A stretch of 64,000 bases of DNA, from positions 10,044,001-10,108,000 of the forward strand of contig CP075495.1 of the NCBI GenBank assembly GCA_021613535.1, read 5' to 3'. Below are positions 52,701-55,357 of this stretch, one piece after another (the first letter of the stretch is position 1; every line of letters begins with the position of its first letter). Under the pieces are notes generated by a model. The model did not search any database. It was not told where the DNA came from and was given only the letters and a program-made list of their open reading frames with translations. Both the position numbers and the translations under genes were made by a program. The stretch comes from Adineta vaga (taxonomy: Eukaryota; Animalia; Rotifera).

Positions 52701-53134
52701 AAGAAAGAATATTACTTATATTATTGTAATAATCCCGAAATATAGATCACCAAAAGTTTACTGCAAAAATAATGAGAACGTCGAAAAATATACCCTTCTT
52801 TTAGTAATCATGCTTAGTAATCCGATTACATATTCGTTAATCTAGATGATTTTATTTTGAATAACTTTTTAATTATAATACATCTGTTCTTTGATCAAAT
52901 CAGGTCGTTTGAGTTCGTTTTTGTTAATCGTAGACCACAAGACACTATCTCCGTAGAAGAAAGTTATCTGCTCATATGATTTATGAAAGAAAATGTATTC
53001 AGTTCATAATATGTTTTAGACAACCGATTAAATTATTCAAAATTCAAAGTGAAACAGTCTGTTTGGTATTAGTATGTTATACAATGAAATTAGTGATAAA
53101 AAAAGAGACAAAATTATGATTTTCTTCATTTTTC

Positions 53135-53165
53135 GACGTTTCGTCATCTTCGATGACATCGTCAG
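53135..53165 (-). ncRNA. Minimal type I hammerhead ribozyme motif (minus-strand copy)
   Basis: Minus strand reads CTGACGA-T-GTCATC-GAA-GATGAC-GAAA-CG-TC: core CUGANGA, 6-bp stem II, GAAA, palindromic ACGU, then GUC triplet. Confidence 0.65.
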
Positions 53166-53268
53166 GATACCACGAACTATACCATCATATTTAATTTTTG
53201 TGTTTAAATCTTGTTCATAGTGAAGTCATAATGCTTTCAATAAATATGATGGTATAGTTCGTGGTATC

Positions 53269-53299
53269 CTGACGATGTCATCGTAGATGACGAAACGTC
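53269..53299 (+). ncRNA. Minimal type I hammerhead ribozyme motif (plus-strand copy)
   Basis: CTGACGA-T-GTCATC-GTA-GATGAC-GAAA-CG-TC; predicted cleavage after C53299. Stem I pairing is weak (about 2 bp). Confidence 0.65.
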
Positions 53300-55357
53300 G
53301 AAAAATGAAGAAAATCATAATTTTGTCTCTCTTCACAGAAAAATCACCTATTTTTGTTAAAAATTGCATCTTATTTTAATTTTTGTGTTGAAATTAGTGA
53401 TGTTTAATAAATTCGATGAAAAAAATCTATATCTCAGTTCAATAGGAGAGAAACAATGTATATTATTCAATATTTGATAATATTATGAAAACATATAAAA
53501 ATTCTTTGATCGCAATTGAATTTATTTCGTTAAATTAGTCAAGATAGAACTTGAATGGTAGACAGTGAAGCATTTGAAAATTCTAACAGAACAAACATTA
53601 CATGTAGCTAAAACAACTTTCCATTTAATCATATCAACTTATTTAAGTAATGAAAATTTCCAGTAATAGGAATATTTAGAAATAGTCTATTTAATTTCAG
53701 TAACAAAATACAAAGAATCAAGAACTTTGCTACAAAAATACTTTTCTTTTAAAAATATTACATAAAAATTTTATTGAAATACAATTTAATTAATTATATT
53801 ACATAAATGTTCTCAAGAATTTTAAGTTTTCATTCGATGTTGAGTCTTATGGATATCATTTCAAAAAAAATAAACTTCATAATACATAACATCAACGACA
53901 TTTCACTAACTTATTGTTTTGGACTAGATACTTGTGCATTGACGTATTACAAAGTTGTTCCTATTGTTAAAAAGATTAAACAATACTGAGAATTAGAAAA
54001 AAAAACTTCATTTCCTCTATTCTTTTTAATGAATCATGCATATCATATATTCTCAGAACTTCTCTCATTAAAAAATGTACCGACTAAAAAAAACTATTTC
54101 TTCCTAGAAAAATTTCTCTAAAAGTCGACGGAAGCTCGAGATATATACTTTGTTGAATCTAATATTGAAGAAAAAAACAAAATTTTCTCGCAAAATAGTG
54201 AGTAGTATTGTTTGAATATTAGAAAAATTTCCACTAATGTTGAAAACTTAAGATAAATGAGTAGTTAAGATAGCAGATATCGTTGTTTAATTTGAAAGAA
54301 TTCAATTTATTGACTTTTCTAACTTTCAAAGGGAGACTATTTTAAATAATTATACAAACAATCGCTTCAATTTTCAAGGATACAAAGAAATGTAATGTTT
54401 CATTTTTTTTTCTCTTAAAACTTCTGGTCATAATCTTTAGACAGTCCAAAGTTTTAACCATCTTTTTCTCTAGATGATTCGCTTGAAAAATACAAATTTT
54501 GAATAATAAACAAGTTTGAACTTTGCTTTTTGAAAAAGTGTGTTCCCTTGCCAACTAAAATAAAAATTACTATTTTCTTTTCATAGTCATCGATCATTTT
54601 CGTTTTGAATAAAAACTCCTTTTGCTTCTCTTGCTTGTCAATGCACCTTTTTCGTACGAAAATTTATAAAAGGACGTTAGTTTCCTTTTCTCATTTGAAT
54701 TCCATTACCAATGATATTTAAACAATGAATATATTAATATGAAAATATAATGAAAGAAAAAAGAATTGTCAGTGAAAAAAATTGATTAATAAAAAGGAAT
54801 CTACATTTTTTATCTTTTTCTTCATACTCATACTTTCCGAATCCTAAGACTTTAGAAAAAACCAGAGCGTAAGATTTTTCATTTTTTCTTACTAATAATA
54901 GTTCATGACTCGAAGTATATAGTAGGTTTTCTTTCTTTGACAAATAGCTCTAATGAAACATATTGAATTTTTTATTAAACATCGTTGAGAACGATAAAGA
55001 AGTCAAAAAAAGGAGAAACTATATAAATTTTTAGTTACTATAGAAATCTGAGATACGATAATGGAAACGAGCGCAACACATACATACATAGTTCTATTAA
55101 CCTCTATGAAAACTTCGGGCGAAAGGTTATAAAATGCACCTTATCGTACTTTCTGCCTTTTTTGTATACTTCAATTATATATTGAGAAGAATATCGGCTG
55201 TTTTTTATTACAGATTATTCAATTTCTACCACGAATCAATCAAGCAAGAAACGTTTTTATTAGATCAAATTTTTCAATTCTTTATTGACTCAAATAAAAG
55301 TTCTTAAAAACTATAGAAGTAATACTTCATTCACTCATTGACGATTTATAGTTAAAA

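Follow-up and report, generated by a model that had tools for sequence, protein, structure and literature searches.

The window analyzed here is a 64,000-nt stretch of the Adineta vaga genome (C2:10044001-10108000; the genome searched comprises 100.8 Mb in 6 contigs), and its subject is a 291-bp insert that carries hammerhead-ribozyme motifs on both strands and lies in AT-rich DNA with few open reading frames (ORFs). The insert is most likely a copy of a 185-nt non-coding, non-autonomous retroelement that originates from the pseudo-long terminal repeat (pLTR) region of a Penelope-like element (PLE) and was integrated in trans by a PLE enzyme combining a reverse transcriptase (RT) with a GIY-YIG endonuclease. 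It represents what is plausibly a new family of an already described kind, not a new kind of element: judged by its anatomy, it is a putative PLE-mobilized non-autonomous element of the solo-pLTR type, provided with the minimal hammerhead motif of PLEs.

The original prediction, made from the letters of the window, had described a perfect 13-bp flanking duplication, 90-bp inverted arms with one mismatch placed in the loop of stem II, and a hammerhead motif in each arm, and all these features were recovered (Table 1). The 13-mer TGAAATTAGTGAT is repeated exactly (13/13) on both sides of 291 bp, and the 90-nt core of the arms is identical in 89/90 positions. In full, the arms (53101-53193 and 53241-53333) comprise 93 nt and are 98% complementary, with two mismatches at 53103/53331 and 53150/53284, the latter located in the helix II loop. 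The insert is asymmetric, since 55 nt of unique forward sequence (53334-53388) separate the right arm from the right 13-mer. Moreover, the last 14 nt before the right 13-mer are repeated directly at a spacing of 185 nt, and the TTTA at 53190-53193 is microhomology common to this upstream tail copy and the end of the inverted arm. The 185-nt unit contains no ORF. A paralogous empty site, sought in the genome via both flanks of the insert, was not found, each flank being single-copy. The possibility that the 13-mer is a part of the arm was considered as well, as it matches the arm-equivalent sequence of other copies in 10 of 13 positions, and was rejected, this level of about 70% being compared with 89/90 in the arms; the resemblance may reflect priming microhomology or chance.

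The motif of each arm is CUGACGA-U-GUCAUC-(GUA or GAA)-GAUGAC-GAA-ACGU-C. Its helix I is formed by just two base pairs (53267-53268 with 53300-53301), cleavage is predicted after C53299, and helix III is reduced to the ACGU palindrome, so that cleavage would need dimerization. A descriptor of minimal hammerhead ribozymes (min-HHRs) yields only these two matches in the whole window, the chance expectation being 0.02 hits per dinucleotide-shuffled window (0.007, if helix II of at least 6 bp is required). As this rate predicts 10-30 chance matches genome-wide, the motif alone is not decisive, and the rest is supplied by the family context.

In particular, a BLAST search with the whole element, combined with a core pattern search allowing three mismatches, identified at least seven loci of the 185-nt-unit family, the window copy included, so that the further genomic copies on which the prediction depended do exist, with flanking repeats and internal junctions of their own. 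The four complete insertions (the window copy, C4a, C5 and C4b), spread over three chromosomes, follow a common plan: direct repeat, inverted partial unit, forward copy, direct repeat. At three of these loci (window copy, C4a and C5) the forward copy is longer than one unit, and in C4b it falls slightly short of one. The flanking repeats are TGAAATTAGTGAT (13 bp), AAGATTAATTAT (12 bp), AAGGTTTTTATT (12 bp) and GAAACAATT (9 bp). The inverted copy lies at the 5' side in all four insertions and in a distant relative (L044), all junctions being different; in the complete copies each inversion junction shows a few bases of microhomology. Given these differences in flanking repeats and inversion junctions, the copies result from independent insertions and not from duplication of one locus. 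The arms within a copy are 96-99% identical (89/90, 134/135, 110/112 and 27/28), and identity between copies is 75-91%; the likeness of arms within each copy, together with perfect flanking repeats, supports a young age of each insertion, although this likeness could also reflect gene conversion within the palindromes. The status of an undescribed family, suggested initially, is plausible.

The remaining family members are fragments or old copies. The two fragments C3a and C3b belong to a 3.1-kb segmental duplication (C3:19530566-19533665, locus L009, and C3:17512437-17515536, locus L010), whose copies are 99.87% identical and located 2 Mb apart; each holds the same 100-bp fragment of the unit with an intact hammerhead motif and U as N7. 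Locus L044 (C5:2787294-2790324, with the motif at C5:2788794-2788824 on the minus strand) has its own inverted segment of 66 bp, 92% identical, and no target duplication is recognizable at this old relative.

The ends of the copies were measured from the predicted cleavage site C17 (the values for C4a and C4b being partly hand-counted). The outer ends lie either at +56 to +59 or at +84 to +90, two discrete classes situated 30-31 nt apart, and the inner ends vary freely among copies. Where both outer ends are intact (C4a and C5), the longer form is present at one end only. The terminal redundancy beyond 185 nt amounts to 14-40 nt in the window copy, C4a and C5, and in these three copies the +89 end is joined directly to unit position -95, the junction being identical. 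Hence the template of these three insertions already had a 185-nt period, which could be a partial tandem, a jump onto a second RNA, or a circle.

Table 1. Parts of the window insert (positions in the 64-kb window) and copies of the family (genome positions; ends counted from C17).
Feature	Position	Strand	Remarks
Left copy of 13-bp target-site duplication TGAAATTAGTGAT	53085..53097		exact repeat; single-copy flanks; ~70% match to arm-equivalent sequence
Inverted truncated unit copy	53098..53193	-	AAA filler at 53098-53100, followed by the arm proper; unit from about +37 down to -53 from the cleavage site
Minimal hammerhead motif, inverted copy	53135..53165	-	CUGA begins at 53165 and C17 lies at 53135; loop II, GAA
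Partial upstream copy of unit 3' tail, TTTAATTTTTGTGT	53190..53203	+	direct repeat of 53375-53388 at 185-nt spacing; tandem junction identical in three loci
One full 185-nt unit, forward	53204..53388	+	from repeat and copy comparisons
Minimal type I hammerhead motif (predicted)	53269..53299	+	CUGACGA, unpaired U, 6-bp helix II, loop GUA, GAA, palindromic ACGU, C17
Optional 30-nt 'tail' between alternative ends +59 and +89	53359..53388	+	C5 and C4b end at +58/59, window copy and C4a at +89/90
Right copy of 13-bp target-site duplication	53389..53401		exact repeat, followed by GTTT
Window copy, ends			right (forward) +89; inverted-arm outer +37 (truncated)
C4a, complete insertion	C4:481 kb		right +90; inverted-arm outer +56
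C5, complete insertion	C5:1.935 Mb		right +59; inverted-arm outer +84
C4b, complete insertion	C4:537 kb		right +58; inverted-arm outer near +89
C3a/C3b, 100-bp unit fragment	C3:17.51 Mb and C3:19.53 Mb		inside the 3.1-kb segmental duplication
L044, distant relative	C5:2.789 Mb		69% identity over 190 bp

Such ends have been described as typical of PLEs. In the A. vaga element Pen2a, a 31-bp 'tail' is optional at one of the inverted pLTRs (PMC3846280), and in PLE insertions a 30-40-bp tail can be present at either end, along with a partial tandem and an inverted copy that is 5'-truncated (PMC8557442). In vitro, a PLE protein cuts and extends both DNA strands and initiates reverse transcription at two sites within the RNA, and the stretch between these sites makes up the tail (PMC11167929). 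The architecture of the insert is this published hallmark of Penelope-like insertions (PMC8557442, PMC3846280, PMC11167929): a partial tandem, an inverted truncated copy, a tail, and direct repeats varying from 9 to 13 bp are all present, in agreement with the predicted Penelope-type insertion with an inverted segment.

The target sites of the four insertions were compared assuming target-primed geometry, that is, a nick 3' of the duplicated segment on each strand (flank positions used: window 53085/53401, L002 1467/1814, L005 1434/1781, L006 1449/1665). The inferred nicks precede GTTT, GTTT, GTTT and TTTA on the top strand, and TTGT, GTTG, GTTA and GTCA on the bottom strand. Thus, GTT directly follows five of the eight sites, compared with about 2% expected in DNA of 30% GC, and three of the four right flanks start with GTTT(A/G)A. 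With four insertions considered, this suggests a palindromic target signature AAC-N9-13-GTT, which would suit a dimeric nuclease acting on both strands.

An apparently intact PLE is located on the same contig (C2:285706-289634, minus strand) and has an open frame of 1309 aa with RT and GIY-YIG. This assignment rests on genome-wide family searches, which match the frame to RVT_1 (42 bits) and GIY-YIG (28 bits), and on about 35 RT paralogues elsewhere in the genome, 25-37% identical to it; a Pfam hmmscan of the frame itself gives nothing at 1e-3. Residues 700-1150 form an Asn-rich block (30-39% Asn), which is a peculiarity of A. vaga Penelope ORFs (PMC3846280). The 120-bp pLTRs of this PLE are 100% identical, with a 2.2-kb inverted 5'-truncated copy upstream, TTGATTAAACTC on both sides, and a 12-bp flanking repeat that overlaps the element sequence by microhomology. 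Its end classes are 31 nt apart (+45/+76 by the maximal flanking repeat, or +53/+84 counting the 8 nt shared with the element). The pLTR hammerhead, CUGAUGA-U-GAUGC...GCAUC-GAA-AGCU-C, has an unpaired U, a 5-bp helix II, an AGCU palindrome and a 3-bp helix I, and the ATG of the ORF is located inside helix II. The same architecture is observed in two further RT-linked elements (C5:761 kb and C1:7.72 Mb), and a pattern search places a matching motif just 3' of a fourth RT/endonuclease frame (C2 at 16.25 Mb).

The motif class is not restricted to these elements. The pattern CTGANGAT-N12-18-GAAASSTH has 51 matches in the genome, compared with 5 for the reversed control, and most of the 51 show clear helix II pairing and form about a dozen sequence (helix-II) families; therefore, the class is real in this genome, and the window family belongs to it. 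Several of these families have solo copies far from any RT, an example being the GGCAC/GUGCU type at C1:16.13, C1:16.28, C3:18.39, C5:0.40 and C5:16.86 Mb, so that solo pLTR-type insertions seem to be common here. The direct alignment of the window hammerhead-to-tail segment with the pLTR of the C2 PLE is weak, with a score of 18.5 that is about 4 standard deviations (sd) above mononucleotide shuffles (mean -1.6, sd 5.0, maximum 14.5), and hence this PLE serves as a structural model and is not a demonstrated partner. As to the link to PLE ORFs with RT and GIY-YIG, proposed initially as a check, PLE RT and endonuclease genes are present in the genome and the intact PLE has the same architecture; at the sequence level, this weak alignment with one pLTR is the only similarity found. 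The claim of a recently mobile, non-coding element moved in trans by a PLE-type RT agrees with the in silico checks (young copies, absence of ORF, PLE architecture).

The following scheme would account for the architecture of the insertions; its enzyme, RNA intermediate and priming sites are inferred, as is any ribozyme activity. In an AT-rich target, the enzyme would nick the two strands at positions separated by 9-13 bp, often 5' of GTT, and each freed 3' end would prime cDNA synthesis at one of two internal RNA starts, approximately 58 and 89 nt past the cleavage site. One cDNA would give rise to the forward copy, running over the unit boundary into a second, tandem or circular template, and this read-through would yield the terminal redundancy of 14-40 nt; the other cDNA would become the inverted copy. 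The two cDNAs would then be joined at a variable point via microhomology, and gap repair would duplicate the target. The hammerhead may be dispensable for the insertion itself.

Eight sequences of the family were compared for conservation of the motif. Variation affects loop II and N7, which can be C, G or U, and in C3a one pair of helix II is a U-G wobble. The core (C3-A9, G12-A14, A15.1/U16.1, H17) is in order in 7 of 10 family instances, namely both arms of the window copy and of C5, the two C3 fragment copies, and L044. The latter, being only 69% identical, retains all 15 core or palindrome positions, and differs by G-C instead of C-G in pair 2.1-1.1 (helix I) and A-U instead of U-A in the fifth pair of helix II. 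In total, 98.8% of cells are paired, with double changes in two pairs, a result reached by 6 of 500 shuffles, and in slid registers the pairing falls to 14-62%. Pairing in helix II remains at 100%, the changes there being one compensatory and one wobble, and the 2-bp helix I has one compensatory change. The predicted conservation of CUGANGA/GAAA/GUC in homologues thus holds for the window copy, C5, C3a/b and L044, and fails in C4b and in both arms of C4a.

Several observations weigh against the insert being a PLE-derived retroelement with a hammerhead. An autonomous element clearly sharing the unit sequence was not found by BLAST, by the core pattern with three mismatches, or in the flanks of PLE paralogues. 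In C4a, a 3-nt insertion (GAACGAACGUC) abolishes GAAA in both arms, and C4b carries A9 to U and A15.1 to G. The covariation support is thin, as both double changes come from a single divergent sequence, L044. Helix I of the window motif is only 2 bp long, and the Rfam hammerhead models give no match at E<=10 in 1.5 kb or 246 nt, the motif failing to reach the gathering threshold of Hammerhead_1 (RF00163) or clan CL00010; generic microRNA (miRNA) hairpins, all below threshold (MIR4371, MIR4245 and others), are the only Rfam matches.

The last two of these points were dropped as evidence against a ribozyme. The search with hammerhead models, proposed initially as a check, came out negative, as is to be expected of a PLE min-HHR in which helix I has 2 bp and helix III lacks a hairpin; both traits are typical for such ribozymes (PMC4209133), and identical architecture is present in the RT-linked elements of this genome. 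As for the core lesions, the one of C4a is found in both arms (L002 1524-1580 and 1679-1735), and the broken ribozyme core was therefore probably present already in the template. Either the motif is not needed for mobility, or the lesioned copies have decayed. Ribozyme mutants still insert in vitro (PMC11167929), which fits the lesions of C4a and C4b, and the ribozyme may be a passenger.

The predicted folding of the RNA depends on its extent. The unit alone folds no better than shuffles (z = 0.04), and in the minimum free energy fold of the monomer helix II is present, but the CGUC at the cleavage site is taken up by pairing with GACG of the core. Read-through transcription of the entire insert (53098-53388) would yield a near-perfect 93-bp hairpin (-158.6 kcal/mol, z = -24.5). 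It is this hairpin that explains the sub-threshold matches to Rfam miRNA models, which are no evidence for a miRNA gene; according to the folding model, it would likely mask both ribozymes and serve as a Dicer substrate. Elsewhere in the genome, near-threshold Rfam hammerheads were observed at L013 (C3:19714842, minus strand), L014 (C3:19516122, plus), L015 (C3:648480, minus) and L016 (C1:17046778, plus). Two of them are Hammerhead_1 matches (33.6 and 31.6 bits, the cut-off being 34) with a 5-6-bp helix I and a palindromic helix III of the AUCGCGAU type, one is type III-like (31.8 bits), and one is HH9-like (28 bits). These loci are mostly situated near chromosome ends, amid PLE/Athena-like RT matches.

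A more novel explanation is that the 185-nt unit is a self-standing ribozyme replicon of the retrozyme type, with a unit-length circular or multimeric RNA as the template, and that the PLE enzyme recognizes the hammerhead-plus-tail module without any kinship of the unit to a resident autonomous element. A circular or multimeric template is consistent with the precise +89/-95 junction that three independent insertions have in common. A retrozyme as strictly defined was rejected, as no locus has two ribozymes on the same strand and the motif lacks the canonical 6-bp helix I; the 'retrozyme' half of the original label and the tandem arrays sought with it were accordingly lost. We consider such a replicon possible, though unlikely. 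If real, it would define what Penelope integration requires in cis, being the smallest natural substrate to do so, and it would also reveal a symmetric preference for nicking 5' of GTT.

There may also be no self-standing family at all, the copies being extremely 5'-truncated, dead-on-arrival insertions (pairs of solo pLTRs) of a full-length PLE that is missing or lost from the assembly. PLEs, those of A. vaga among them, are commonly 5'-truncated and commonly present as solo pLTRs (PMC3846280, PMC8557442), and genome searches found no autonomous partner. Moreover, the motif contains an ATG where the PLE ORFs of this genome start, and the frame is open in the inverted arm of the window copy and in C3a; in most copies, however, it closes after three codons. 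The +89/-95 junction shared by the window copy, C4a and C5 implies a template with a 185-nt period, whereas an autonomous element would have its ORF after +89 and its 3' untranslated region before -95. On balance, truncation of a lost PLE is rather improbable.

The first reading of the locus was a palindromic repeat generated at the DNA level, either a miniature inverted-repeat transposable element (MITE) or foldback transposon, or an inverted duplication arising in replication, with a hammerhead-like motif occurring by chance. The long inverted arms and the flanking duplication are superficially MITE-like, Rfam yields just sub-threshold matches to generic hairpins, and 0.02 chance motifs per window correspond to tens per genome. 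However, the arms are not terminal, given the unique sequence between the right arm and the duplication, the flanking repeats have no fixed length, and instead of fixed terminal inverted repeats there are two end classes and variable inner junctions. In addition, the motif architecture is common to RT-linked PLEs here, 10-fold enriched over the control, and covarying. A MITE or foldback transposon was rejected on the basis of the variable duplications, non-terminal arms and two end classes, and a DNA-level origin in general is very unlikely. It is hardly credible that the inverted arm is an assembly artefact, the true locus having a forward unit only or nothing. Tandem and inverted PLE structures do cause known problems in assembly (PMC8557442), but the plan recurs with different junctions at four loci on three chromosomes and in the autonomous PLE, and the arms carry one or two real differences and are not exact copies.

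No class of retrotransposons is less well understood than PLEs, whose cis-requirements were not mapped in vitro until 2024. A natural passenger of 185 nt that keeps the hammerhead motif and about 90 nt downstream of it, as the PLE-derived retroelement described here would be, is a compact natural experiment. Its two discrete end positions, which occur at either end and are separated by 30-31 nt, and its head-to-head copies, whose inner junctions vary, agree with priming from both nicked strands at two internal RNA sites, and two members apparently copied with a broken ribozyme core bear on the question whether the ribozyme is needed for mobility. The symmetric target signature AAC-N9-13-GTT is a testable suggestion from this family. 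For genome annotation, the lesson is that Rfam models miss such motifs and that generic hairpin or miRNA matches at such loci mislead.

Among known systems, the closest are the pLTR-only and trans-mobilized PLE insertions of A. vaga itself (Arkhipova, Yushenova & Rodriguez 2013, PMC3846280). Shared features are a direct pLTR accompanied by an inverted, shorter one, a 31-bp tail that may be present at one end, junction microhomology, very low copy number, non-PLE or non-coding content mobilized by pLTR sequences alone, and the Asn-rich ORF block, seen here in the C2 PLE. The target duplication is 8-10 bp there and 9-13 bp here. Unlike those insertions, the whole unit of the window family is 185 nt with nothing captured between the repeats, the repeated part (14-40 nt) is without a ribozyme, and no autonomous element with a matching pLTR was found in this assembly.

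The motif itself resembles the min-HHRs of PLEs (Cervera & de la Pena 2014, PMC4209133), which combine a short helix I with a long helix II that has an unpaired nucleotide on its 5' side; their helix III has shrunk to a short palindrome and functions in dimers only. Such variants escaped standard descriptors, and motifs of this kind were reported in rotifer PLEs. The resemblance is strongest to the variant from Drosophila virilis Penelope (2-bp helix I, 6-bp helix II, 2-nt palindromic insertion in helix III), and includes the CUGANGA...GAAA core, the unpaired nucleotide 5' of the 6-bp helix II, the ANNU palindrome of helix III implying dimers, and helix I as short as 2 bp. As each locus of the window family has one predicted sense ribozyme beside an antisense one, the dimer would form between molecules, in contrast to these hammerheads.

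Short non-coding PLE passengers with pLTRs and head-to-tail insertions are also known from Chlamydomonas, the Chlamys element MRC1 being an example (Craig et al. 2021, PMC8557442); unlike the window family, those elements share 3' ends with known autonomous families and have no hammerheads. Metazoan non-LTR retrozymes (Cervera & de la Pena 2020, PMC7229834) are similar in several respects: their units are non-coding, AT-rich and 150-450 nt in length, they have a type I hammerhead and target duplications longer than 4 bp, and they are proposed to have originated as non-autonomous PLE derivatives; moreover, the terminal redundancy observed here is compatible with a tandem or circular template. 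They differ in that their monomers form head-to-tail arrays and each contains a hammerhead of the canonical type, with a 6-bp helix I and loop-loop contacts, so that circles can be excised, whereas here every locus has at most one ribozyme per strand, and its motif is of the minimal PLE type. Animal retrozymes in general have been argued to be non-autonomous PLE derivatives (Li, Clavereau & Pollet 2026, bioRxiv 10.64898/2026.07.22.740005), and on such a continuum between retrozymes and PLEs the window family would sit at the PLE end.

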